Under the pieces are notes generated by a model. It was not told the origin of the DNA and searched no databases. It worked only from the letters and a program-made list of their open reading frames with translations. The position numbers were made by a program, and so were the translations under genes. A stretch of 64,000 nucleotides of DNA, taken from NCBI GenBank assembly GCA_964234715.1, contig OZ174277.1; one strand, 5' to 3'. This DNA comes from Podarcis melisellensis. Lineage: Eukaryota. This document shows positions 1,920-61,857 of this stretch, piece by piece (position 1 is the first letter of the stretch; every line of letters begins with the position of its first letter).

Positions 1920-2022
1920 CTTATTATGTGTCTGCGTTTGTCCAACCAGTATAAGAATATTTGATGAGATAATAGACAGGCAGAAATTAATTAGAATTAT
2001 TGACCTCTCAGATCTGATGTAT
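1920..2022 (-). CDS. ADGRB3: ADGRB3/BAI3 internal coding exon (ICL1-TM2), 103 nt
   Basis: The minus strand reads ttctttggacag|A TAC ATC AGA TCT GAG AGG ... CAT AAT AAG|gtatga = (R)[34 protein letters not shown], matching ADGRB3 as I recall it. Canonical AG/GT; phase is compatible with the exon at 6283-6386. Too short to appear in the ORF track. Confidence 0.96.
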
Positions 2023-5930: not shown

Positions 5931-6282
5931 GTAGGATTCTCAACTGAAATGGCAGGTCCACACACTCTTCTCCAGTGAATTGAAAGGGGAAACCCCTGAC
6001 AGTGGTGGAGCTCTGAATGTGGCTCCCCAGTGTTGAGAAGAAATGGTGATAATAATAGCAGATATCATTAATGCTGAATAGGAAGAGAAAATAGGGCATT
6101 TGATCACCACCAGGCCAAGCTTGAACAGAAACCGTGTCAACCTAATCAGACTTATTAATACGTTACAACTCTTCTGCAGTAGCGATCTTGTTTTTCCTAG
6201 ATTAATAGAAACCCTTCTTCAATGACCCCTCAGTTCTGAATAATTGCACATTTCTATAAACCCACACGATTCAATTACATAC

Positions 6283-6386
6283 CTCCATAGTGCTGCATAG
6301 ACAACTGCTAGGGTGATCAAAGCCAAGCATGAAAGGCCACTGCCTACTATAAGGGTTACTGAGGGAGCACCAGATGATTCCATGAT
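6283..6386 (-). CDS. ADGRB3: ADGRB3/BAI3 internal coding exon (TM1), 104 nt
   Basis: cccacag|ATC ATG GAA TCA ... CTA TGG AG|gtatgt = [34 protein letters not shown](R), inside ORF 6219-6521. Ends in phase 2, joining the A at 2022. Confidence 0.96.
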
Positions 6387-7988
6387 CTGTGGGTCATAAC
6401 AAACATCTATCAGATAAAACCATGTTCCAGTAACTAAACCATAAAACCAAAACAGGAGAGATGGATATCTGATGTAGTGATTAGCCACATCATCTAAGTA
6501 GCATTGCCAACAAGTAACCACGTCTCTCTACTTCAGCCTCTGTCCTAGCTCCTAAAGTACCCGAGGCCTGGGTATTTACAGAATACCAAGACAGTAACCC
6601 CACTGGTCTTTGATGATATCCTCAGTAGTCTATTTTATCTCATGAAAATAAATACATGAAATTTTTTTAAAAGAGAGAATAGGGAAAGCCAATAGTCTGA
6701 TGGCCACCCATAACATTAACTGACATTAAAAAGCTCTCTAGGTTTTGCTTTGAGGGGAAAAAACTTCACAAGTAAAAATTGTTTTCCTCCTTGAAAGGCA
6801 GATGTATTTGGATAGCAATGTTCTAAACAAATTGTGTGATTTATTCTGACAAATGTAATGCCAACTAATTTCTTATCCAAAATACAAGATCAAACTTTCT
6901 AACTCTACCAGTAACTTTGCCTTAAAGCCAGCATTCATTTTCTTTCTGTCTCTTAGGAGCTAAGAGAGTACCAATTTATGAAAAAAAGAGAACAAAACAT
7001 ATGCATCATTTGTAAGATCTGGACCTCTGAAACAATAGCACTTCTAATGTTTAATATTTATAGGAGCTGAAGTATAAATGACCTTGAGGCAGAATAACCA
7101 TTTTTTTTGAGCTATGAAATTACCTCCAACACCCCACCTTTGCCCTACACACAAGCATTTACACTGGTTTTGTTGGTTTTGTTTTGTTTCAAAATGTACA
7201 AATTCAAAACAATTAGACCAGGAAGTTTGCAGTGATCTGCTGCTTGATTTAGCAGTGTGCTGCTGAAAAGCCTCAAGGCTCCAGTATAAATTGCATTTTA
7301 TCAAGATACAATTTGTAACCAAGGTGAGGCAAACTGTATATCTTATCCAGGTTTTTAAGTTTATTTCTGCCAAATACTTCTAGTTTACTGCTGAGAAGAC
7401 CCTTGGCCACACACTGAAAATCTTTTTCCCTTAAAGCTTCAAGGTGCTTCCTCTTTAAAACAAAAAACACCAACCAACCTATTTTATAGGCATTAATACT
7501 GTTGATTTCCTATTTCTCGATCTTCATCATTGCATTCATACTAGAGGGTCTATTTTACAAGATATCAACAGACAGCATAGATTCCTTGTAATGCCCAATG
7601 CAGAACTGCAATCTGTTTAACTAGTGTAGCTAGGTTCCTGCTTCTACCAGCAACAATAAAAAAACCTTGTATATTCTTTTTTCCCTTCTTTTTTTTTTAA
7701 AAAAGAAAACCCAGGACTGTAATACATTACATTACAGTTGCTAAGTTTTCTCTAAGAAAACAGGAGTACCTCAGCACTTGAAACTGACTAGCATTTAGTT
7801 ATAAGGCAAAACCAGCAATTCGTTCCTCAAAACTAAGAACTGCTAATAGATAAGAGAAAAGCCAGTCTTTTCCAGACCTGCAACGCTGATACAATTTCTC
7901 ATCTGAGTTAATGCTGGACACATAAAAACACACACCAAAAACCCTCCCAGTCATTGCATTAAACTCAGGGCTTTTTTCTTCTTCTTCT

Positions 7989-8128
7989 NNNNNNNNNNNN
8001 NNNNNNNNNNNNNNNNNNNNNNNNNNNNNNNNNNNNNNNNNNNNNNNNNNNNNNNNNNNNNNNNNNNNNNNNNNNNNNNNNNNNNNNNNNNNNNNNNNNN
8101 NNNNNNNNNNNNNNNNNNNNNNNNNNNN
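7989..8128. other. Assembly gap (140 N)
   Basis: Run of N. Confidence 1.
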
Positions 8129-8138
8129 AGAGTCGTTC
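8012..8138 (-). CDS. ADGRB3: ADGRB3 GPS/Stachel exon, mostly inside assembly gap (3' end inferred)
   Basis: A long polypyrimidine tract and tgcag| (AG at 8140-8139) are followed by G AAC GAC TCT = (x)NDS, matching ADGRB3 '..TNESLGTWSTQGC..'. The rest falls in N 7989-8128. The end at 8012 assumes the 127-nt human exon size (from memory), which fits the gap and the required phases. Confidence 0.75.
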
Positions 8139-8427
8139 CTGCAAGAAGAGAGAGGGAGGGAGACAGAGAAAGAGGGAGGGAGGGAGAAAGAGAGAGAGAA
8201 AGAAAATCGGGATAATTACGGCTGACGGTCAATTCCTTGAAGAGAAAATGCAGTTTAATTGAGAGCAGAGTCTAGTGTGGTTCCCGGACAGAAGAGATCT
8301 ACTTGTTGTTGAATAGGACTTAATTTAGATGCATCTCCAGCTGTACAGTAATGCGGGGAGGGGGGCGAGAGAGGCGGCGAGGGAGGGGGACAGAAGGCAA
8401 GCAGGCAGCTCGGCGGCGCGCAGTGAG

Positions 8428-8451
8428 CTGTCCAGAGCTCTTGGTGCTGAA
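8428..8451 (-). promoter_or_regulatory. Non-canonical (split) REST/NRSF RE1 site
   Basis: Minus strand TTCAGCACC-aagagctct-GGACAG(CTC): both RE1 half sites exact, with a 9-nt spacer instead of 2. Confidence 0.55.
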
Positions 8452-8637
8452 AGGGCTCTGTAAGAGCTCTCTCGGCTCGCCGTAGAAGCGGAAGCCTTCC
8501 CCGCTGCCCGCCGCTTTCCCAACTGCTCAGATCACTGCGAAAACTCATAGCGGGGGGAAATAAAACAAAAGACCCTTGTGGTTCCCCCACCCCCCGTCTT
8601 TCATACCAGCTCTGCCACGTTTTTGTGAAGCTATTAC

Positions 8638-8999
8638 CTCGCTCCCTCTCTTCCGTGCGTGTGTGTGTGTAATTTAAATGCAGATGGCTCTGTAATATCT
8701 GTCTGATTAACACTGGTTAGATTGGCCAATTCTGGGTCTTCTTTTTTTCTGGCTAGGATTTCGTAGGTGGTGTAGCTATTTTGTTCTCCTTGTGGGTTTT
8801 CAAGCTCAGCCTTGCGGATTTCACCCTGGAAACGGGCGGCAGCGGCTGATTCCTTCTCCAACTCTTCCCTTTTTCGCCTGAGCTCCAGCGCAGGGGTGGA
8901 TTTCAGCAGGGCAGCGCATCGTTCAAGAGACACCAGTTCGCCCTCCAGACATCCCTCCGTCCAACTCGCCCTGCTTCCCTCCCTCCTTTTCCTTTCCAT
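8638..8999 (-). CDS. Candidate alternative first coding exon of a short ADGRB3 isoform (120 aa + 2 nt)
   Basis: ACCATGG Kozak (ATG 8999-8997), open frame MERKRREGS...HGREGA, ending at GAG|GTAATA donor (GT 8637-8636) in phase 2. Joining to 8138 gives AG+G AAC GAC TCT (R-N-D-S) in frame. Confidence 0.5.
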
Positions 9000-10092
9000 G
9001 GTACTGGTGGGTGTGTGGCGGAGGAGGGGAGGGGGGGACACGGGACACACAAGCGCGAAGAGATCGTTTGCTGGGGCTTTATCCACTACCACCCTGTTCT
9101 TAAAGGGGAGGGGGGAGAGCCTCAAGAAAAAAAAGAAAACGCCACCCTTGATTTGATTAGCAATTTAAAAAGTACAAAAGCTTCTTCTCTAATCCTCCCC
9201 GGTAGAGCAATAAAATGGTATCAACCCGCGTTTTCCTTGTGCAGAGAAAAAGAGCAAGGCGGGAGTAGGGGTGGGTAGTGGGTGGGAAGAGAGAATCGCC
9301 TTGTTTTTCCATGTGAATCAAAGGGGTTACGGGGTCTCTCCTCAAGGAGAACTGCTCGGCTTCTTCGGACTCAAACCAGTTTTCACGCATTTAATGTTTT
9401 GCGAATTGGAACAGGCGGGTGTCGTTTCCTTCCCCCTCACATGCCTTCGCACAAGCTCTCTCGCCCCCTCCCCCCGGTTTCCAGAACCAGGCTTCGTATG
9501 CAGGGATTCATGTATTGCCTAAGCTATCTGTGCACGGATGCCAGGAAGTCTCCTGCAAGCAACAGCGAGTGCTGTCAATTCCATCCCCAAGGCACTTAAA
9601 AACAAGGGGGAGGAGGAGGTGGCGAGAGAAGGAGAGGGAGGGGAAGAGCGCTTTCACCTTCAAATTCCTCCTCCTTTCAACTCCCTTTGAACCAGCCCTC
9701 CTGCTCTGGCTTTCCCACGTCTGTTCGCGGCGATGACTGCGAGCGCGGACTCTGGAGCCCCGGCCATTTGTGCTCCGAAGCGCGCGCCCTCCTATCCCAC
9801 CAGGCGCCACTTGCCTTCCACACCCCGCGAGCTCAATAGTTGGCACTACAAATGGCTTCGGAGCCGAGTCATAAACAAAGCAAAAGACGGGGGCGGGGGT
9901 GAAGAGAGTCCCCCAAACTGCGCTATTCAGGATCTCCTTCGGTACCCTGTCCAGGCCAGCTGTAGCCTTCAAACTCACAAACGCCTAAAAACTCCAGGAC
10001 TATTTTCCTTTAAATTGTGTGTGTGTTTGAAAAATTAGTATTTATGTTGTAATTCACACAGACATATATAATTGGTATATATTGTCTAATTT

Positions 10093-10093
<1 letters not shown>

Positions 10094-10138
<45 letters not shown>
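10094..10138. repeat. (CA)n microsatellite at the edge of the CpG island
   Basis: Direct reading. Confidence 0.95.
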
Positions 10139-10142
<4 letters not shown>

Positions 10143-12836: not shown

Positions 12837-13065
12837 TCCCCTGTCTGAGTCAAGATAATGCAACTGTATATTGGTACTTCTGGGGCTCATGTTTTAATCT
12901 GTTTATATTCCTTAAATGGAATCTTGGGGAATGTATTCTGTGTGGTGAGTGGCATTCTACCATGGAGAATTCTCAGTAGCACCACAAAAGTTTAATTTTA
13001 AATTCCTTGGGGAAAGCTATGAATTAGAAAGCAGTTAACTTTAAAGGTTTGCTATTCATATATAT

Positions 13066-13431
13066 GAGGGACGCGGGTGGCACTGTGGGTAAAACCTCAG
13101 TGCCTAGGACTTGCCGATCGTATGGTCGGCGGTTCGAATCCCAGCGGCGGGGTGAGCTCCCGTCATTCGGTCCCAGCTCCTGCCCACCTAGCAGTTCGAA
13201 AGCACCCCTAAGTGCAAGTAGATAAATAGGTACCGCTTTATAGCAGGAAGGAAACGGTGTTTCCATGTGCTGCGCTGGTGCTGGCTCACCAGATGCAGCT
13301 TGTCACGCTGGCCACATGACCCGGAAGTGTCCTAGGACGGTGCCGGCTCACGGCCTCTAGAGCGAGATGAGCAAGCAATCCCAGAGTCAGACACGACTGG
13401 CCCGTACGGGCAGGGGTACCTTTACCTTTAC
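13066..13431 (+). mobile_element. Full-length Sauria SINE with 14-bp TSD
   Basis: tRNA-like head (gggacgcgggtggc...ggttcgaatcc), ACCTTT tail, TSD ctattcatatatat at 13052-13065 and 13432-13445. Confidence 0.93.
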
Positions 13432-14525
13432 CTATTCATATATATCCTAAATAAACTGTGTCAAAATTAAATTATTTTAATCCCACAGCACTTGAATTCT
13501 GTTTGATTTGAAGAAGGCACAATTTCTTTCTTAGGGATGGTTATTCAGCTGTCACCACAGTATGTTTGAAACTTTCAAGATATCTGGCCACAATAATGGT
13601 ACCAGACTTGTCCTCCTTCCTATTTCCCCCCCCAAAAACCTATCCAATCATGCTTCCTTTTGTTCTTTGAACTTCCCTGAGGTTCCTCTATTGAGTCACT
13701 GGCTCAGGCATGTAACTCTGACCTCAAACCACAAAAGCAGCAGCAAATACTCAATGCTCCCAGCTGGAGCCATCAGCTTTTACAAGAGAGGCAGAGCTGC
13801 TGCCCTGAAGGAATGCCCCTTGTTGGTTTATGGGGAACAGCCTGCCACAGCAGTATGTCATATTGGTCTCATTGCAGAGCATCACACAGGATGCTGTATT
13901 TGCTGAACACATATTTGCTGTACAAAGATGTAACGACATGTGATAGCATGTGTCTCACCCTTTTATCAGGGCAACTCTGCTTGCTTATTCGGACCTAGGA
14001 TTTAGCCTTGGAACCAATTAAGTTATTGATAAAGAGGACAGTATCCTGTTTCCTATTGGGAATGTTTTCCTAATTATTCCTTCTTTTGTTATAAGGTTAT
14101 ATTATAAAGCAAGGTATATGTGTTTTTGTGTAATAGTTATAAAGTGGCACACCTACCAATATTGCTTGCTGGTTCTATGTCAAGTTAAAAATTAAAAATG
14201 CTTTAGCTAAATTTATTTGCCCAGGTTGACCAGTTTCAGAATGGTGCAATACAATTCTCAGCTAGGGCGACTTCTGTGACTTTAGCATCATCCTGATACA
14301 ATTTTAATTGTTTCAGGATTGCGTTTTTATTGTTGTGAACTACCTTAGAGGCAGAAGATGGCCTATAAATGTATTTCCTTATGTCCGATAATATATTCAA
14401 ATATATGAATATTTTTGAATATTCAAATATTTGAATATTTTACTATATTTTTGGTTTTGGTTTTTATGGAAGCCGCCCAGAGTGGCTGGGGAGGCCGAGC
14501 CAGATGGGCGGGGTATAAATAATAA

Positions 14526-23489: not shown

Positions 23490-23897
23490 TGTGATGGGAC
23501 GATGAGCTGCTTGTGCGTAAAATGCAAGTCCCTCAGAGTTTGATCAGGTTTTCAAACCTCTGCCTGTGACGGAGCCCCTCCAGCATGGCTGCGTCAATCA
23601 CTAGTAGAATCCGAAAGTGGCTGCTTTCGGAATCGTTTCCAACATAAAAGCTCCTTAACGGAAACACGTCGTCTGGCCTCTCGGCGTGACAGTTTCCGTC
23701 GAGGTGTGGGTGTCCCTATAGGAGGTCCTGAGACCTCCCCACTGTTTTCGCTGGAAGCGTCTCTGAGCCATCCCTCCGACTCACTTTCCCTTGGAGTTCT
23801 TGCTCGCCCTCTACTGGTTCCCTCTTCCGCTGCTACTCCTCTCTCAACCTCAGTGAGCCTTTGCGCCTCCGGCGCTTGAGATGGCAGTTCCCTGACA
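23490..23897 (-). repeat. 3' LTR (408 bp)
   Basis: TGTCAGG...CATCACA on the minus strand, preceded by a polypurine tract. Confidence 0.97.
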
Positions 23898-26800
23898 TCC
23901 ACCTCCCCTCCAGGGCCCCCTTCACCCCCTCCCGTCTCCTCTCCTACTGGCGGTGAGGAGGTAAAACCCCTGAAAGAACCTCCCTCATCTTCCGACGTCG
24001 CGAACACTTCCCTCCACTTGTTGCTGTTCCTACTCTCTAGGTACTCTTCGTCATCGGAGTCCACTCCCTCTTCCAACTCCGACTCCGCGAACCCTTCCAT
24101 TTCCTCTTCCTCATCGGTGGTGCCGAAATACTCCCTCCTAAACCTTGCTATCGGCTGAGGTTTCCTCGGGAACCTTTGGTGGAACGTTTCTGTTAAAACC
24201 TCGTCATTGACTTCCTCTGCACTTACCCAGGTGTTTTCTGACTCCGGTTCCCCTTCCCACGCCACTAAATACTCCACCTGATTTCCCTTCCACCTGGAAT
24301 CGAGGATTTCCGCTACATGATTGCGGCGTTCCCTCTCTTCCAAGGCTGGTCCCCTGACGTACTCCCCTTCACGTCCCCCCCTGTATGGTGACAGTAACGA
24401 CCTGTGGAACACTGGGTGCAATTTCATGTGGTTGGGTAATCGGAGTTTGAAAGCTACCGGGTTGACCTGCTGAATGACCTCAAAGGGTCCCAATCTTCTG
24501 GGCCTCAATTTCTTACAACCCCCTTTGAACGGCAACCCTTGGGTTGACAACCACACTTGATCCCCCACCCTTATGGTTTCACCTTCCCTTCTGTTCTTGT
24601 CTGCCTGCTTCTTATATTGTGCCTTAGCCCTTTCTAAGTTGAGCTGGAGCTGATGATGGATCGCTTCCATCTCTTCTACAAAATGTTCAGCCGCTGGGAC
24701 GCTCCATCTCTCCCCTCCTTCCCCTGGAAATGCCCTGGGGTGACACCCGTAATTAGCCAAAAAGGGACTCATCCCTGTGGACACATTCTCCGCATTATTG
24801 TAGGCAAATTCTGCCAACGCCAACTTTTCGACCCAATCGTTCTCTCTGTCATTGACATAACACCTCAGATATTGTTGAAGAATGCCATTTGCTCTTTCCG
24901 CCTGCCCGTTGGTTTCAGGGTGCCGGGCAGTTGAAAAATTGACTTCCACGTGCAGCAAGCTCATGAGCTTCCTCCAGAACCTGGAAGTAAATTGTTTGCC
25001 GCGATCTGAGATCACCCTCAAGGGAGCCCCGTGCAACCTAAAGATGTGTCCTACAAACAACTTCGCTGTTTCTTCCGCTGTGACTGCATGTGAGCATGCT
25101 ACAAAGTGGCACATCTTAGTTAACAGGTCTACTACTACCATGATGGCTGTTTTCCCCTTGGACTTTGGCAGATCCGTCATAAAATCTATTGATATCGCTT
25201 CCCAAGGCCGTTCTGGTGTGGGTAATGGTTCTAATAACCCTGCCGGCGCCCTTCTTTCCCCTTTGGCTCGCTGACATTGGTCACACCCTCTTACATACTC
25301 TCTTACATCTTCCCTCACCTTAGGCCACCAAAATTCCCTGGTAACCAACCACATGGTCTTGTGTTGTCCAAAATGTCCCGCCGTGGGGCTATCATGCAAC
25401 TGCTTGAGTACTCTCCCCCTCAATTCACCTTCGGGTATATACAGTGCCCCTTTGTAATACAATGCCCCATTTCTTTCCTCAAAACCTCCGGGACTCTCGC
25501 CCTCCCCCCTGAGACCTCTGAGCTTATCCTGGGCATATTCATCATTTTCCGTTTCCTCTACCAGTTCTCGTTGCCCCACCAACGCCGCCCCACACACCCA
25601 CCGGTCCTCAGGGATGACATGTCTCTCTTCGATCACCCCCTCCCCTTCCCAATACTCTGGTTTGCGTGAGAGCGCGTCCGCCCTGACGTTTTCTGGGCCT
25701 GGCACATAACAAATTTCAAAGTTGAATTTGGAGAATTCCTGTGCCCATCTCACTTGTCGTTGGTTGAGCACTCGAGCTGTTCTCCAATACTCTAAATTCT
25801 TGTGGTCGGTGCACACTTGCACCTTGTGTTGTGCCCCAATTAATAAATGTCTCCACCTCCGGAATGCTTCGTGAATGGCAAGTAGTTCCCTGTCATACAC
25901 CGTGTAATTCCTCTCGGATTTATTCAGCTTCCGCGAGAAGAAGGCACACGGTCTCCACTCCGACGCACTCCTCCCCGGTTGAAGAAGGACCGCCCCTACC
26001 GCCCGGTCGGATGCATCGGTTTCCACTCTCATGGGTTTTCGTAAATCCACATGCAGAAGTTGTTCTTCCGAGGCGAAAGCCCTTTTCAGTTCTTCAAAGG
26101 CTCGATCCGCCTCTACCGTCCAAACAAATTTCTTCTTGCTGCTGAGGCAGTCGGTGATGGGCGCCGTCAAGTGGGCAAAGTTCTTGATGAACTTCCTATA
26201 AAAGTTCCCAAACCCCAAGAATCTTTGCACGTCCTTCTTGGTCTTCGGTGTCTTCCATTCCAGTACCGCTTGGACCTTGCCTGGATCCATGGCCAATCCC
26301 TTGTCTGACAAGCGGTACCCCAGGAATTCCACCTCCTTGGTGTGGAACTGGCACTTCTCCAGTTTCACCCACAGCTGGTTGGCTTGCAGCCTGCCCAACA
26401 CTTCTCGAACGTCCCTCACATGCTGTTCCTCATCTTCCGAATACACCAACACGTCGTCTAAAAAGGCCACACAATTCTTGTAGAGCAAAGGTCCCAGAAC
26501 GTGGTTTATAAAAGCTTGAAAACACGCGGAGCCCCCTTGTAGACCGAAGGGCATAACGAGGTATTCAAAGGCTCCCAAAGGGGTAAACATGGTGGTCTTC
26601 CATTCATCTCCCTTCCTTATGCGTATCAGATTGTACGCCCCCCGCAGGTCCAGCTTTGTAAAGATCTTTCCCTTCCTTACTCTGGTCAAAATGTCATCAA
26701 TTCGGGGCATAGGGAAAGCCAGGGGCTCCGACACTGCATTGAGGGCCCTAAAGTCACACACCAGTCTCGGTTTGTCTGTGTTCTTTTTGTCCACAAAAAA

Positions 26801-27685
26801 CACTGGGCTGCCCCCCACCGCTCGGGACTCTCTGATGAAACCTCGCTTCAGGTTTTTGTCAATGAACTCCCTCAGCTCCTGCATCTCCCTGTCTGACATG
26901 GCGTACAGCTTGCCTACTGGGAGTTGGGCCCCAGGGATTAGGTTGATTTGACAGTCAAAGGGTCTATGCGGTGGCAGTTTGTCTGCTTCCCTTTCGCTGA
27001 ATACGTTGCTCAGATCTGCGTATTGCGGGGGCACCTTCCCTTTGTCCATTACTTCCATCCCGGCTAGGGTGACTCTGTCTCCTCCCGAAACCTTCCCCTC
27101 CTTGCAGTGTTCTAGGCAATGCGCTGACCCAAAGGAGACCACCCTCTGATGCCAGCCCACTAGCGGATCGTGTAGCGCCAGCCAGCTCATCCCCAAAATG
27201 ATGGGCGCTCCTCCCAGGGTGGCCACATTAAACGCTATCTGTTCGGTGTGCCTTGCCACCCTCATTATCATCGGGACAGTCTGTTGGCTAACTTCTCCCC
27301 CCAACAGCTCTCTGCCGTCAATCGTAGTCACCTGCAAGGGGTTACTTAAAGGGATGGTCTGTATCTGATGCTCAGCTGCAAACTCCTTACTCATGAAATT
27401 ACAGGAGCTGCCTGAATCCAAAAGCGCCTTGATCTTTAGTGGGTGTCCGTTTGGCAGTTCTAGTAACACCTCTATCACTAAAGCGGGTCTGGGAGGTTCC
27501 GGTGTGGGCACTTTCACTGCTCTTTGGCCTGGCTGCTGTGCCCCGACGGTGGCAGCCAGGCGTTGGCTTTTACTTGCTCCTTGCCTTCCTCTTCCTTTCC
27601 CCCAACAGCTCCTGCCATCCCTTGCCATTCCTTTCTTTGTGGGCAGACTCTGGCAAAGTGCCCTGGCTGTTGGCAGAGATAACAT
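23594..27685 (-). CDS. pol: Pol (protease, RT, RNase H, integrase, chromodomain, acidic/basic C-terminal extension), in the -1 frame relative to gag
   Basis: LLDSGS protease; MPFGL and FLDD RT; TDASD/DRELLAI/TDH RNase H; HHCC, D-D-E and GPF integrase; EILDSR..YLVAWEG..NTW chromodomain. No stops. The start is probably reached by frameshift, not initiation. Confidence 0.96.
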   Translation of the reverse strand: MLSLPTARALCQSLPTKKGMARDGRSCWGKGRGRQGASKSQRLAATVGAQQPGQRAVKVPTPEPPRPALVIEVLLELPNGHPLKIKALLDSGSSCNFMSKEFAAEHQIQTIPLSNPLQVTTIDGRELLGGEVSQQTVPMIMRVARHTEQIAFNVATLGGAPIILGMSWLALHDPLVGWHQRVVSFGSAHCLEHCKEGKVSGGDRVTLAGMEVMDKGKVPPQYADLSNVFSEREADKLPPHRPFDCQINLIPGAQLPVGKLYAMSDREMQELREFIDKNLKRGFIRESRAVGGSPVFFVDKKNTDKPRLVCDFRALNAVSEPLAFPMPRIDDILTRVRKGKIFTKLDLRGAYNLIRIRKGDEWKTTMFTPLGAFEYLVMPFGLQGGSACFQAFINHVLGPLLYKNCVAFLDDVLVYSEDEEQHVRDVREVLGRLQANQLWVKLEKCQFHTKEVEFLGYRLSDKGLAMDPGKVQAVLEWKTPKTKKDVQRFLGFGNFYRKFIKNFAHLTAPITDCLSSKKKFVWTVEADRAFEELKRAFASEEQLLHVDLRKPMRVETDASDRAVGAVLLQPGRSASEWRPCAFFSRKLNKSERNYTVYDRELLAIHEAFRRWRHLLIGAQHKVQVCTDHKNLEYWRTARVLNQRQVRWAQEFSKFNFEICYVPGPENVRADALSRKPEYWEGEGVIEERHVIPEDRWVCGAALVGQRELVEETENDEYAQDKLRGLRGEGESPGGFEERNGALYYKGALYIPEGELRGRVLKQLHDSPTAGHFGQHKTMWLVTREFWWPKVREDVREYVRGCDQCQRAKGERRAPAGLLEPLPTPERPWEAISIDFMTDLPKSKGKTAIMVVVDLLTKMCHFVACSHAVTAEETAKLFVGHIFRLHGAPLRVISDRGKQFTSRFWRKLMSLLHVEVNFSTARHPETNGQAERANGILQQYLRCYVNDRENDWVEKLALAEFAYNNAENVSTGMSPFLANYGCHPRAFPGEGGERWSVPAAEHFVEEMEAIHHQLQLNLERAKAQYKKQADKNRREGETIRVGDQVWLSTQGLPFKGGCKKLRPRRLGPFEVIQQVNPVAFKLRLPNHMKLHPVFHRSLLSPYRGGREGEYVRGPALEERERRNHVAEILDSRWKGNQVEYLVAWEGEPESENTWVSAEEVNDEVLTETFHQRFPRKPQPIARFRREYFGTTDEEEEMEGFAESELEEGVDSDDEEYLESRNSNKWREVFATSEDEGGSFRGFTSSPPVGEETGGGEGGPGGEVDVRELPSQAPEAQRLTEVERGVAAEEGTSRGRARTPRESESEGWLRDASSENSGEVSGPPIGTPTPRRKLSRREARRRVSVKELLCWKRFRKQPLSDSTSD
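23898..23911 (-). other. Polypurine tract
   Basis: GGAGGGGAGGTGGA immediately before the TG of the 3' LTR. Confidence 0.85.
27506..27574 (-). other. -1 ribosomal frameshift signal (A_GUA_AAA + H-type pseudoknot)
   Basis: Stem 1 GCCTGGCTGC/GCAGCCAGGC (27561-27552 / 27536-27527); loop GGGCAC pairs with downstream GTGCCC (27511-27506); 6-nt spacer after AGTAAAA; lies in the gag/pol overlap. Confidence 0.65.
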
Positions 27686-28533
27686 CTCTTGGCGCTCTTT
27701 CCCTCCTTCTTCCGCCCTTCACTGGGATTTGAAACTGCGCGCGCCCGCGCTGTTCCAACTTCCATCGGCTCTGCCGGCGGGAAAGGTGGCTCTGGAATGT
27801 CTGGAATGCGGAACTCCCTCCAACGGTCTCCTTTCCCTTCCCGCTTTTCCAAAGCCCTCGCCTCCTGGCGCGCTCCTATGGACAGCGCAGATTTGGTTAA
27901 CTGGTCCATAGACTCCGCCCTGGGCCCCCGGGAAAGCTCATCTTTGACGGTTGAAGAAAGCCCCTCTTCGAAAAGCATTTGGATGGGCTCCGCCGATAGG
28001 TCCCACCCCAATTTATGAATCAGCATAGTAAATTCAGTCCAGTACTCACGGACAGATCTGCTTCCTTGCTGGCAAGCCATTAACTGCCTTCGCACCACCC
28101 CCTGCTCAATATCGCTGGAAAACATCAGGTCCATGGCACGAAAAAACTTCCTCGTGTCCTTTAGGATCTCATTATTCGCTGCCATCAGGGGTCTAACCCA
28201 ATCTTTCGCCCCGGATTCGAGATGGCCAATCACAAAAGCCACTCGCGATTCCTCGTCGGGGAAGTCATCAAACTGCAAGTTTAGAGCGTATTGCATCTCT
28301 GTCCTAAAGGCATGATAATTCCTGGGATCCCCCCCGAATTTCTGCACCAATCCTGGCACCTTTCTGGCGAGCGGGGTGGTTTTCTCCTTTCCCTTTTCTG
28401 CATCCTGAGCCCTCCTCTCCTCAAGCCTCGCCGTTTGCAGCGCCAACTGGATCTCCAACGCCCTGTACCTTTCTTCCAGGCTTGGACCCCCTCCAGCTGC
28501 TCCTGCTCCTCCGGTTCCGGCTGGGTTGCTCAT
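27514..28533 (-). CDS. gag: Gag, 339 aa (retrotransposon capsid + CCHC zinc knuckle)
   Basis: First ATG after the PBS (MSNPAG); the ORF-track start at 28617 is a TTG inside the LTR. Contains a Ty3/PEG10-like capsid region, the EPMEVG motif and CYLCQQPGHFARVC. Confidence 0.93.
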   Translation of the reverse strand: MSNPAGTGGAGAAGGGPSLEERYRALEIQLALQTARLEERRAQDAEKGKEKTTPLARKVPGLVQKFGGDPRNYHAFRTEMQYALNLQFDDFPDEESRVAFVIGHLESGAKDWVRPLMAANNEILKDTRKFFRAMDLMFSSDIEQGVVRRQLMACQQGSRSVREYWTEFTMLIHKLGWDLSAEPIQMLFEEGLSSTVKDELSRGPRAESMDQLTKSALSIGARQEARALEKREGKGDRWREFRIPDIPEPPFPPAEPMEVGTARARAVSNPSEGRKKEGKSAKRCYLCQQPGHFARVCPQRKEWQGMAGAVGGKEEEGKEQVKANAWLPPSGHSSQAKEQ

Positions 28534-28566
28534 GATGCTTCTCCCTGCACAAGCTGGCTTTCGGTG

Positions 28567-28577
28567 ACTTTCGGATT
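28567..28577 (-). other. Self-priming primer-binding site (non-tRNA)
   Basis: AATCCGAAAGT, 2 nt after the 5' LTR, with no TGG. Exactly complementary to ACTTTCGGATT inside the LTR (28708-28698). Confidence 0.8.
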
Positions 28578-28579
28578 GC

Positions 28580-28987
28580 TGTGATGGGACGATGAGCTGC
28601 TTGTGCGTAAAATGCAAGTCCCTCAGAGTTTGATCAGGTTTTCAAACCTCTGCCTGTGACGGAGCCCCTCCAGCATGGCTGCGTCAATCACTAGTAGAAT
28701 CCGAAAGTGGCTGCTTTCGGAATCTTTTCCAACATAAAAGCTCCTTAACGGAAACACGTCGTCTGGCCTCTCGGCGTGACAGTTTCCGTCGAGGTGTGGG
28801 TGTCCCTATAGGAGGTCCTGAGACCTCCCCACTGTTTTCGCTGGAAGCGTCTCTGAGCCATCCCTCCGACTCACTTTCCCTTGGAGTTCTTGCTCGCCCT
28901 CTACTGGTTCCCTCTTCCGCTGCTACTCCTCTCTCAACCTCAGTGAGCCTTTGCGCCTCCGGCGCTTGAGATGGCAGTTCCCTGACA
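28580..28987 (-). repeat. 5' LTR (408 bp)
   Basis: Direct repeat of 23490-23897, differing only at 28725 (T) vs 23635 (G). Confidence 0.97.
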
Positions 28988-42000: not shown

Positions 42001-44036
42001 CAATTTACATTTTTCAAACTATTGATTTAGGCTGCATTCTCACACAGTTTAAATCCCCAGTCAGTGGAAGAACAGCAACCTGAATGCAGGAGTGCATCTT
42101 AGTTTAAACATGTTCTATCTGGTCTAGTTATTCACGCCATGTACTAATTCACTCTCCTGACCTCTATCTTCATCTACCTTGACAGTCAATATGGGTGGTT
42201 TCATCTGTTGTGATCCATTGTCAGTAACACTCCCTTGCCATTAAGCTTGCTGCTAGACTTTATTTTGCACCTTTACAACCTTTCTAAAGGAAAGGTGGTG
42301 CAGCATCTTCACACTTTTGCCTGTGGAATAATACACTACCACCCTGACATAAAGGATGTAATATAAAATTTAGTGCATATTATTCCCGTGTGATCAAACT
42401 TAAGTATTACAAAGGTTTTAGGAGCTACTGTGTTGCTAAACTATAAAGCAAAATCTACAATGTCACTTGACACGATGTTAGAGCCCCAGAATCAAGAGTG
42501 ATAGCCATGTATGTACCAGAATTAGGCTCCGGCTTAAATCCTGTACACATTTACTTAAGATTAAGCCTCGCTGAAGGAACAGGGTCTTGTTCATAGGTAA
42601 ATATTGCTGGAATTGGGACATGAGTAACTGAGACTGGAACCAGATTGCGCATGTATTTACTTGATCTTTTCAGGATGTTTGTATACAGAAGTCCTACACA
42701 GTTCTGCCATTTCTTTCCGGTCACTTAAATATTTGCAATTAGTTTTTGTGTGTGTGTGGGTGCTATTTCATTCTCTTCTTTTTTGTGTCTTATCTTACTC
42801 TGCGCACTTGTAATTATGTACCTTTTATGAGGGTTCCTTCCAACTCTATAATTCTATGCATCTATGATCCTGGTGGCTCTTGGGTTTGGATTGCTCCCTA
42901 AATCTCACTGAAAGCATTGGCATGGGGCTTAGTCTGAAGTCTCATTTATTTCTATAAGACCAAAAGAAAAAGCCAGTTGCGGAATTTATTGAATTGCACC
43001 CATAGTGTAGATATAATATTTTGTTTCTTCTTGGAAGATGTGGCTTACGCCTAACGGAAATATGTGGCTGCATAAATTCTCTTGAATTATTATTATTATT
43101 ATTATTGATGAAAAGCCATTTAAACAACTTGCACAATTTGCAAGAAACCTGTTGCTAAATCTACTTTGCCAAGGCTGAATAAAACAAAATCCTGAAGTTC
43201 CAGAACTATAAGTTTTTAGAAGTCAACATCAAAATGCCCGGCTTTTGACTGCAAGTAAGGATAGAAAAAAACAAACACCACACATTCCTAGGTTCCAACA
43301 TCAAATCTATAGATGTGTGGAACTATTGCAAGGAATAGTTTTCTTATCAGAGTGTTTCCCTGCTGCAATAAGCTTTTTGTAAACTCCACCTGTGGCCATC
43401 ATACGCTGAAGTGGAAGTTAATGGAGAGGTTATTTCTTTCTTCCCATTCTTTTAGATGATTCTGAGAACTGCTAACAGGTTGAATCAAATGTCAGCTGAA
43501 ATCAATAACCTGGAGGTGAGAGTGTCTATGGACTAAATCAACCTTAGTGGAAGGAACAAAGTGGCCACAGGAGACAGAGTCCACTTAGAAAAACCGACGT
43601 CCTCCTCTGGCACTTAAAAGAAATTGCATCCTGCAGTTATGGGTATGTGCTGTAGGTTAGGAAGGACAGAAAATAACTCACCACACCATATTGTCCAGGT
43701 CCCTAATTGCTACATGGTTATTTTGTGTTGTTAAGAGCTTGTATGAAACATAATAAAAGAAGCCCTGAATTTGAATACTTCTATCAGTACATAAGCCAAA
43801 AACCAGCATGACTGTCAGTTCATGACACATTGCTCAAGGATGCAGACTACATAAGCTGCCTAAATCCTTATTGAGTTCAGTGGCACTCAAGCAGCCCAAG
43901 TGCTCCAAATCTTAGCCAGTCACTTGGATCTTAAGAACTGCAAGTAGAGTTATGCTTGCGGAGAGGGCTTTCCTGCCTCCCTCTCCCCCCACGGCTGACC
44001 TGCACACATACAAAGGCTACATTGGATTTGAAGGCC

Positions 44037-45287
44037 TTGTTGTTGTTTAGTCGTTTAGTCATGTCCCACTCTTCATGACCCCATGGACCAGAGCACGCCA
44101 GGCACTCCTGTCTTCCACTGCCTCCCGCAGTTTGGTCAAACTCATGCTGGTAGCTTCGAGAACACTGTCCAACCAGCTCGTCCTCTATCGTCCCCTTCTC
44201 CTTGTGCCCTCTATCTTTCCCAACATCAGGGTCTTTTCCAGGGAGTCTTCTCTTCTCATGAGGTGGCCAAAGTATTGGAGCCTCAGCTTCACGATCTGTC
44301 CTTCCAGTGAGCACTCAGGGCTGATTTCCTTAAGAATGGAGAGGTTTGATCTTCTTGCAGTCCATGGGACTCTCAAGAGTCTCCTCCAATTCAAAAGCAA
44401 ATTATTCGGCAATCAGCCTTCTTTATGGTCCAGCTCTCACTTCTATACACTACTGGAAAGTTGGATCCTCCTAACAGAGGGTCCATGTTGTGCTCGACCC
44501 CTGAAACTCTTCCCCAACTGGCTTGTGGGCGGGGCTTGCCCCGCTCTAAGCCGGTGGTGCTACAGTTATGCCAGCATCGTGGCAAAGGTTGGGGGTTGGG
44601 GGTATCTATTTGGTAGTGTGACATAGGGACCTCCTTTTGCTTTGCGCTGCTGAACACCCGCCCACTCACCCATTAATTAGGTCGTGTTTGGCCTTGCTTT
44701 GGACTTCGGTTGGTTTGGAACGGGGGCTGGGTAGGAATTTTTCCCAATGTGGCAGATTGGCTGTGACCACTTGGTTTTTGCCTACCTCTTAGCTATTGTC
44801 ACAACTTTGTAAGGTTAGGCGGTTAGGCACTGGTTATGGGGAATGTGGGGAGAAGAGGTGCGGCCATCACCTGCCCCTCCAATCAATAGGGTATTCCGTT
44901 AAAGGAATCTGGGGGTCTGGATCTCGTCCGAAGCCCGGAGAGGGGCCAGGGCCATGCCAGGACCCCTGGGAACCCCAGGGTGAGCACCAGTCAATATACT
45001 GACGGAGATCCCCCTGCTGGTTGTTTAACCTTACAGGCTTCCTGCAGGGTGGGGCAGGAGCCAGATATAGTTTGATATCAACGCCTAAGTCAATACCAGT
45101 CACATTTGTGTATTCAATAAAGTTGTGGCCAAAATTTGCCCATTAACATTTAAACTAAATTCTGTCTCCACGGTGTCTTTATTTCCATGAGGGATGGGTT
45201 TTGGGGCTTGGAGCACAAAACTATAGCTTTAACTATACGGACCTTTGTCGGCAAGGTGATGTCTCTACTTTTTAAGAAGCTGTCTAG
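44037..45287 (-). mobile_element. BovB LINE 3' fragment interrupted by an LTR-like insert (44037-44459 + 45221-45287)
   Basis: (TTG)n tail; minus-strand WRRLLRVPWTARRSN..LRLQYFGHLMRR and LKSRDITLPTKVRIVKA from the BovB RT C-terminal region on either side of the insert. Confidence 0.9.
44486..45220 (+). mobile_element. Solo-LTR-like sequence nested in BovB
   Basis: Termini tgttgtgctc.../...gagcacaaaa (imperfect inverted repeat); AATAAA 45116-45121 followed by a GT-rich tract; no clear TSD. Confidence 0.55.
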
Positions 45288-45709: not shown

Positions 45710-46230
45710 CATACCCTCCAACATTTCTCCAATGAAAATAGGGATGTCCTATTCCATAACAACATCAACAGTTTTAGTAGTTGAGTAGTTTCCAACAACT
45801 ACCACTCTGGGTGGCTTCCAACAAATATAAAAACATAATAAGACATTAAACATTAAAAACTTCCCTATACAGGGATGCCTTCTAAAGGTTGTACAGTGGT
45901 ACCTCAGGTTACAGATGCTTCAGGTTACAGACTCCGCTAACCCAGAAACAGTATCTCAGGTTAAGAACTTTGCTTCAGTATGAGAACAGAAATCGTGCAG
46001 CAGCAGCGCGGCGGCAGCAGGAGGCCCCAGAATGGATTAAGTTCTTAACCTGAGGTACCACTGTATAGATACTTATTTCCTTGGTTCATCTCCTTACCAT
46101 CCGACATTTCCCTGATGAAAATAGGGACTTCCTAAGGAAAAGTGGGACATTCCAGGATCAAATAAAAAACCAGGATAGCTTCTGAAAATCCACGTCTGTC
46201 CCTGGAAAATAGGGACACTTGGAGGGACTG
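45710..46230. mobile_element. Composite hAT-like MITE containing an L2 fragment and the nested Mariner MITE
   Basis: Ends cataccctccaa / ttggagggactg; the terminal block ..acattt..gatgaaaataggga.. is repeated at ~45710 and ~46095. Confidence 0.6.
45894..46063. mobile_element. Tc1/Mariner-type MITE, internally deleted
   Basis: Same TIRs and TA TSD; opposite orientation to the 17885 copy. Confidence 0.88.
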
Positions 46231-46394
46231 TCATTGTGCCAGAACACTTTAATGCGCTCTAATTGAGCAAACCTAAATTTCTGATATGTGATTCCATAAC
46301 TCCTGCAAGATACTGAGAGAGGTGATCTAGATAAATATGTCTCACTTTTCAAGGACTAAGCCCTCCCAAAGTGACTGACAATAGAACACCAATA

Positions 46395-48096
46395 GGGCTT
46401 CCGGGTTGGCGCCATCGCCGAATGGCGGACTCCCTCCGAGCTCCGGAGGGAGCCTGCTCGGCAGGGGCTGGGTCCTACCGCACCGGCGATGCGGGGACCC
46501 TTAAAAACCACGGCCACGGAGGCCGTGGACATGGAGACTCGGCTGGCACCGCTAGCGCCCTCCCGACTCGTGAAGGAGCCTTTTTAAAGGCTACGGATCG
46601 GGTGCCGGGGAGAAGCGTGGTGCTTTGAGTCCACCGCTATCCCTGCCGAGCGAAGCCGCATGCCATCCGGCGGAGAGCGCTGACTTCTTCCATTGAGAAT
46701 TCGGATTTTAACAACAACCCGTGAGTAATTTGGAAACCGGGTTTAAAAGGAGAGGAAAAAAAAAGAATTTTTTTTCGGATTTGGCACGAGCGGGGGGGGA
46801 TCCAAAAAGGAAGTCAGTCCCCCCCCCCCCCACTGTAAACCTTCCAAAACAAGGACTGGGAAACCAAGGTCCAAAAAGAATTGGATTGCTGATAAAAACT
46901 AAGAATTCCACGATGGGAAACTACAAGAACTGTGCTGGAGGAAGAATGGAGGGAGAAGGAAAACGTAAACCCCCCCCCCTGGGAACCGGGGTGATTGAGG
47001 AGAGAGCCTGGCGAAAAGCGAAGGAGATTTTGACAGCTGTCAAAGTAGCTGTCAAAGTCGGAAATTCGAAGAGGATTTTAGTACGAGGACTTTGCTGGTT
47101 AATTTTGTTACAATTTGTTACAATCTGTTAAAACTTGGATACAAAATGGCGAAAACATGGATAACAATCGGACTTTTGGATTAGAGAAAACAAAGTTACA
47201 ACAACCCCCCTAGAGGAGTTTCGGGACATTACAAAGAAGGTCGTAAGTGGAAAAATACCATCGGAATTTTACAGGACTGGTTATCTTCTGGGAAAGCTGC
47301 AAAACGGAAACAATATTGTGTCTACAGGGTGTTCAGCTAAAGGAGACAATAGAATTTTCTGTTGAAGAAAGGAAGGGACTGAACGCAAGTTTTTGTTCCT
47401 GAATAACAATAACCCCTGCAGACTTACTAAACTTCTGAATTAGAACGTTTTAGCAGCGGAACAAGAGGAAACTGGACTATAACTTGGAAAGAACAATAGG
47501 GGGAGTCTTATTAAAAGATTTGAAGTTAAATGGTTTTAAAATAATTTTAAAAATAATTATAAAAAGAAAAAGCCAACAAGGAGTTGGGGGAAAAATGTGA
47601 CTTATGGATTTTAAGAATTCCAGGCAGACAACAAGGATCAGGGGGAAACTAAACCGGGGACGGGGGGGGGGGGGAGAAATAGAATCCAAAGGCTTGTCAA
47701 CTATTTTCTGGATTGGCTTTTTTGTTTATCTATTATATTCTTTTCTTATTTCTTATTTTTTTATATTTCTATTGTGTGGGGTGTCTTTATCATCAAAAAA
47801 AGGGAAATTGTGGAACGGAAAGGGGGCGGGCCCTGTGGAGAGAATTTTTGTTTTCTATTAAGTGTATTGATGAGGATTGTATAAATTTAAATCTAAATTT
47901 GACTAATGGTTTAAACAAACTAAGTCTTAATTTGAATTGAGAGCTTGTAGAACCAACAATATGATAGGGGAATATGGTAGGGGTGGGGGAAGGAGGGAGT
48001 CCCGGAAAGTGGGTATATGAAAATAAGGCTTTGAATGTACTTTAACCTTTTCTTTCTGTATTTCTGAAAATCTTAATAAATATTATTATAAAAAAA
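46395..48096 (+). mobile_element. Non-autonomous L1-type retroelement (HAL1-like), 1.7 kb, 5'-complete
   Basis: 18-bp TSD gacaatagaacaccaata (46377-46394, 48097-48114); CpG-rich 5' end with CTTCCGG and ATGGCGG; AATAAA 48075-48080 and an A-rich tail; no long ORF. Confidence 0.8.
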
Positions 48097-61253: not shown

Positions 61254-61857
61254 NNNNNNNNNNNNNNNNNNNNNNNNNNNNNNNNNNNNNNNNNNNNNNN
61301 NNNNNNNNNNNNNNNNNNNNNNNNNNNNNNNNNNNNNNNNNNNNNNNNNNNNNNNNNNNNNNNNNNNNNNNNNNNNNNNNNNNNNNNNNNNNNNNNNNNN
61401 NNNNNNNNNNNNNNNNNNNNNNNNNNNNNNNNNNNNNNNNNNNNNNNNNNNNNNNNNNNNNNNNNNNNNNNNNNNNNNNNNNNNNNNNNNNNNNNNNNNN
61501 NNNNNNNNNNNNNNNNNNNNNNNNNNNNNNNNNNNNNNNNNNNNNNNNNNNNNNNNNNNNNNNNNNNNNNNNNNNNNNNNNNNNNNNNNNNNNNNNNNNN
61601 NNNNNNNNNNNNNNNNNNNNNNNNNNNNNNNNNNNNNNNNNNNNNNNNNNNNNNNNNNNNNNNNNNNNNNNNNNNNNNNNNNNNNNNNNNNNNNNNNNNN
61701 NNNNNNNNNNNNNNNNNNNNNNNNNNNNNNNNNNNNNNNNNNNNNNNNNNNNNNNNNNNNNNNNNNNNNNNNNNNNNNNNNNNNNNNNNNNNNNNNNNNN
61801 NNNNNNNNNNNNNNNNNNNNNNNNNNNNNNNNNNNNNNNNNNNNNNNNNNNNNNNNN
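61254..61857. other. Assembly gap (604 N)
   Basis: Run of N. Confidence 1.

Follow-up and report, generated by a model that had tools for sequence, protein, structure and literature searches.

An intronic CpG island of the lizard Podarcis melisellensis (8139-9960) is probably the orthologue of a known internal promoter for head-less ADGRB3 transcripts. An internal promoter for an ectodomain-less receptor is not a new idea: it has been described in the literature for both the mouse orthologue and the paralogue ADGRB1. Positions refer to the window, which is the whole stretch of 64,000 nt that was analysed (contig OZ174277.1).

Base composition was calculated for 8139-9960. The island is 1822 nt long, with a GC content of 0.538, 85 CpG and a CpG o/e of 0.646, and it passes the Gardiner-Garden and Frommer test (at least 200 bp, GC at least 0.50, o/e at least 0.60). 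In the kilobases on either side the o/e is only 0.03-0.2. The edges of the island are sharp, its core lies at 8339-9938, and CpG are densest in the blocks 8339-8538 and 9739-9938. Promoter motifs are few: two GC boxes were found, and no TATA box is present in 8139-9960. All long frames of the island, on both strands, were scanned against Pfam without finding a family, a match to LEA_5 being at chance level (E 0.07). The island was delimited from its sequence alone. In cold-blooded vertebrates, islands called from sequence do not always agree with those that are non-methylated. A (CA/GT) microsatellite of ~24 units occupies 10094-10142, ~130 nt past the upstream edge of the island.

The host gene, a family-B 7TM gene, is on the minus strand, and the island adjoins the exon next before its TM1 exon (Table 1). 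The acceptor of the adjoining exon reads ttgcag/GAACGACTCT, with its AG at 8140-8139 (a slash marks a splice junction here and below). The exon begins at 8138 and is masked behind the acceptor by a run of N at 7989-8128. The next two exons are 104 and 103 nt long, and the introns are ~1.6 and ~4.3 kb. These exon sizes match mouse Adgrb3 exons 25 and 24, where the introns are ~1.7 and ~5 kb and the preceding exon 26 is 127 nt (PMC6667449 supplementary file 4). From mouse exon 26 we infer a length of 127 nt for the masked exon (8138..8012). With that length (1 mod 3) and a TM1 exon that starts in phase 0, the first base of the masked exon would complete a codon. The 104-nt exon encodes a TM1-like helix and carries a Met codon at 6383-6381 (minus strand), ~8 residues ahead of the helix. 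Exon 1920-2022 matched Pfam 7tm_2 at E 7.9e-6 and 25.7 bits (cut-off 20.6), over profile positions 32-63 of 250. A Pfam scan of the frame 6222-6527 gave no match, nor did a PDB search with the 34-aa exon, a short query. Since a TM1 exon and a 7tm_2 exon lie downstream, the masked exon should encode the residues just before TM1, that is, the GPS/Stachel region. The database match identifies a family-B 7TM gene; by its exon/intron geometry the gene is taken to be probably ADGRB3 rather than B1 or B2.

Table 1. Features of the host gene, the CpG island and the candidate first exons, in window coordinates.
Feature	Position	Strand	Basis or remark
Exon covering ICL1 and TM2, 103 nt	1920..2022	-	Pfam 7tm_2; splice sites read
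TM1 exon, 104 nt, phase 0 start	6283..6386	-	cccacag/ATC ATG GAA ... AG/GTATGT
Exon before TM1 exon (GPS/Stachel region)	7989..8138	-	Acceptor read; first 10 nt readable, rest N
CT-rich polypyrimidine tract (~70 nt) and acceptor of constitutive exon	8139..8210	-	Read in sequence
CpG island, candidate internal promoter	8139..9960	.	Composition only
Candidate intron, 499 nt, GAG/GTAATA to ttgcag/	8139..8637	-	Sites read in sequence
Candidate alternative first exon, coding part, 120 codons + 2 nt (AG)	8638..8999	-	ATG 8999
CA dinucleotide microsatellite, encodes HTHTH just before the donor	8655..8670	-	Read directly
Second in-phase pair, ATG 9511, 23 codons + 2 nt, CAT/GTGAGG (GT 9440-9439)	9439..9511	-	Best-scoring donor

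The position of the island was compared with that of the internal promoters described for adhesion GPCR genes. In mouse Adgrb3, first exons 27-34 have their starts 658, 859 or 929 nt ahead of the 127-nt exon; they are either continuous with it or spliced to it over 93, 107 or 391 nt (PMC6667449 supplementary file 4). Together, the displayed variants with these first exons account for ~56% of islet transcripts, and Bai3 is named among the genes in which a promoter separates off the C-terminal fragment (CTF) (Knierim 2019, PMC6667449). The lizard island occupies the matching place: it lies at the 3' end of its intron, directly upstream of the exon (127 nt by inference in the lizard) that precedes the 104-nt TM1 exon, in the geometry of mouse exons 26, 25 and 24 by which the gene itself was provisionally assigned. 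The mouse first exons fall within ~1 kb of the 127-nt exon, and their products are without the whole ectodomain. The orthology of the two promoters, which rests on position and not on alignment, is probable. The candidate lizard introns are 468 or 499 nt, longer than those of mouse, and for the mouse gene there is no report of a long new coding extension.

The paralogue ADGRB1 has an alternative promoter in intron 17, in human and mouse (Parag et al. 2024, PMC11711277). It spans ~2.2-2.5 kb where the intron meets the GPS exon, which is the paralogous position, although the gene is not an orthologue. New first exons splice to the GPS exon or extend it, the isoforms have no signal peptide, and the main start codon is in the following TM1 exon, with an occasional new in-frame ATG in the first exon. 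Activity of the ADGRB1 promoter was shown by chromatin marks, Iso-seq and a reporter assay, and the mouse Adgrb3 transcripts were observed, whereas the lizard island is known here as sequence. Transcription split between NTF and CTF is also described for Adgrd1, Lphn1, Celsr2, Gpr97, Emr1, Emr4 and Lphn2, and CTF-type variants were found in 67% of the adhesion GPCR genes analysed (Knierim 2019, PMC6667449). In these cases, as proposed for the lizard, an internal promoter parts the 7TM half from the adhesive half, but the genes and the intron positions are different.

The sequence-only reading had described a CpG island of ~1.8 kb directly upstream of the GPS exon, which the measured length and o/e bear out. 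It had also mentioned the intron-17 promoter of ADGRB1, in agreement with PMC11711277. Its proposal of an intronic promoter for an ectodomain-less ADGRB3 stands in part: position and published homology favour the promoter (PMC6667449, PMC11711277), and the coding first exon attached to it found no support.

Transcription, splicing and translation were predicted from the observed island, splice sites, exon phases and orthologous position. Minus-strand transcription would begin within the island. A weak donor (8637, 8606 or 9440) would then join the first exon to the acceptor at 8139, or the first exon would continue into the constitutive exon without splicing; both forms occur in mouse. The most likely start of translation would be Met 6383, which precedes TM1, or else a Met encoded by the masked exon. 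Met 6383-6381 is a likely start for head-less transcripts by analogy with ADGRB1 exon 19 (PMC11711277). The product would be a C-terminal fragment, consisting of the 7TM region and the tail, without the CUB, TSR, HormR and GAIN domains. A transcript would use ATG 8999 only if it started farther upstream and was spliced from donor 8637; 121 lineage-specific residues would then stand ahead of those of the GPS exon.

Protein data on mammalian BAI3 are available for comparison. A CTF-sized BAI3 band remains in mice with an exon-10 frameshift caused by a 7-bp deletion, as cited in two reports (PMC13062082, PMC13197933). Wild-type B3 has RLS at the GPS and is not self-cleaving (PMC13062082; its non-autoproteolysis is also given in a table of PMC13197933), and PMC13062082 points to alternative promoters for the persisting band. 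A band of ~73 kDa was described in brain (PMC10301052). Ectodomain-less BAI3 in neurons gave ~5-fold stronger signalling, yet blocked normal functions (PMC13322242). On the strength of that last study, constitutive activity is plausible for an ectodomain-less receptor in general, and the predicted lizard form may share it.

It is unlikely that the island serves as something other than a sense promoter. Candidates of that kind are an enhancer, a CpG island of the orphan or Polycomb type, and a promoter for a non-coding RNA, whether antisense or independent. A search of run records for the stretch brought up DNA runs that contain it and raw RNA runs of a close relative; none of the runs containing it is recorded as RNA, which would fit such an element, as would the weakness of the donors. 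The long frames on both strands also fit compositional bias better than genes. Against it stands the exact positional match to the internal promoters of mouse Adgrb3 and of human and mouse ADGRB1. In addition, no Rfam family was found at gathering threshold in 6330-64000, and no conserved plus-strand ORF points to another product. Five runs, which contained 26-28% of the sampled words, were considered as expression evidence and rejected; at 39-97 million letters they resemble reduced-representation DNA more than RNA-seq.

Quite improbable is a true coding first exon at 8999..8638, read in frame over the 499-nt intron, with a 121-residue hydrophilic N-terminus in place of the ADGRB3 ectodomain. 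What the sequence-only reading had seen at this site was found on the minus strand as described. The ATG at 8999-8997 stands in ACCATGG, which is a perfect Kozak context. The 120 sense codons that it opens end at GAG/GTAATA in phase 2 (GT 8637-8636). The proposed intron length of 499 nt is correct, and the join is in frame provided that the masked exon has the mouse length of 127 nt; the agreement of the phase with the inferred frame of that exon favours a coding exon. The second phase-2 donor of that reading, CTG/GTATGA (GT 8606-8605), was likewise recovered. It gives a 468-nt intron and ends the open frame 8258-8716, in which no Met lies upstream of the donor.

Translation from ATG 8999 depends on where transcripts start. 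No other ATG lies between 9311 and 8999, in favour of its use, and seven further ATGs lie upstream; only a transcript with its start from 9311 to 9000 has ATG 8999 as its first AUG. With transcription start sites placed as in mouse (~8796-9067), the 5' ends of many transcripts would fall at the ATG or downstream of it. There is a precedent in one human ADGRB1 transcript, in which a new in-frame ATG in the intron-17 first exon adds 7 residues (PMC11711277), against 121 in the lizard candidate.

Donor sites were scored with an approximate matrix, so the scores are good for ranking only: donors 8637 and 8606 are third and fourth of the 68 GT sites in the island (2.7 and 2.5 bits), the best is CAT/GTGAGG (3.5 bits), and all are weak. 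The donor at 8637 is without a G at +5. As the best-scoring donor is itself paired with ATG 9511, in-phase pairs of ATG and donor are not rare in the island.

Dinucleotide shuffles of the island served as the null model for the ORF. An open frame of at least 176 codons occurred in 16% of shuffles and an ATG-initiated ORF of at least 121 codons in 26%; by itself, the length of the ORF is ordinary. The island is generally stop-poor, with eight open frames of at least 100 codons over both strands, against 3.1 in shuffles. Only 0.25% of shuffles had an ATG followed by at least 120 codons and then by an in-phase donor that scored no lower than the observed one, with an approximate matrix and a donor score threshold chosen after the site had been seen. 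The rarity counts in favour of a coding exon; with at least 50 codons, the same in-phase arrangement of ATG and donor was found in 5.8%. The TAA that terminates the frame belongs to the donor motif AG/GTAA, so ending at the donor and being in phase 2 are one coincidence and not two.

The translated frame was then compared with known proteins. A word search among proteins of 66-210 aa found no relatives, and no Pfam family was found in the frame. An exhaustive HMMER search of 1.84 billion representatives of 50% clusters was also blank, which is weak evidence because such an isoform would be clustered under full-length ADGRB3 and could hide there. Single-sequence AF2 was uninformative, with a mean pLDDT of 65 and a pTM of 0.26; beyond two long helices, nothing was modelled with confidence. 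The Kyte-Doolittle maximum over 19 residues is 0.82 and no signal-peptide-like or transmembrane-like segment was found by this measure, as expected from the hydrophilic N-terminus without a signal peptide that had been proposed. Charged residues make up 42 of the 120 (20 K/R and 22 D/E). Counting the exon residues, ~170 residues would stand ahead of TM1. As a general rule for GPCR N-tails, that length without a signal peptide makes an N-out topology unlikely. The frame also contains the CA microsatellite (Table 1), in which gain or loss of a single unit would shift the reading frame.

With no relatives, no family, weak donors and a frameshift-prone repeat, the claim of a 120-codon coding first exon was not sustained, yet its arrangement remains rare in shuffles. 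A squamate-specific de novo coding first exon, mostly helical and charged, that is spliced in frame to the GPS/Stachel exon and caps the tethered-agonist region at a conserved internal promoter is a slim prospect. A GC-rich repeat or a piece of transposon as the source of the CpG is extremely improbable: the largest CpG-rich block of the window, at 23-29 kb, is indeed a transposon, but 8139-9960 has no transposon domain in any frame, no second copy in the window beyond a 40-nt low-complexity match, and no long tandem array.

Several further features were seen elsewhere in the window. A Ty3/gypsy LTR retrotransposon lies at 23490-28879 on the minus strand; it shares the intron with the island, is oriented like the gene, and explains the 6 kb of CpG-rich sequence at 23-29 kb. 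It has a gag frame of 375 aa (27517-28641) and a pol frame of 1374 aa (23597-27718) with protease, RT, RNase H, integrase and chromodomain. Its direct repeats of at least 300 nt (23490-23789 and 28580-28879) are 100% identical, so the insertion is probably very recent. Deep inside this intron, a CpG-rich stretch at 46000-47600 has a GC content of 0.46, an o/e of 0.72 and 60 CpG; no Pfam family was found in the 139-aa frame 46712-47128 (plus strand). Weaker CpG enrichments were seen at 13000-13999 (o/e 0.46) and 44000-44999 (o/e 0.35), and the 191-aa frame 44051-44623 (plus strand) contains no Pfam family. A run of 604 N at 61254-61857 is either a gap or a deliberate mask.

For specialists, an internal promoter of lizard ADGRB3 would be a confirmation in one more lineage and no surprise. 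It bears on the origin of the CTF-sized BAI3 band, as BAI3 does not cleave itself (PMC13062082), and on what ectodomain-less BAI3 does (PMC13322242). If the island is active, a CTF-only promoter of ADGRB3 would be common to mammals and squamates. Since ADGRB1 has a promoter in the paralogous intron, an active lizard island would also mean that the promoter may predate the duplication of the BAI genes. An origin that early would argue for head-less BAI receptors as an old, selected product rather than transcriptional noise.
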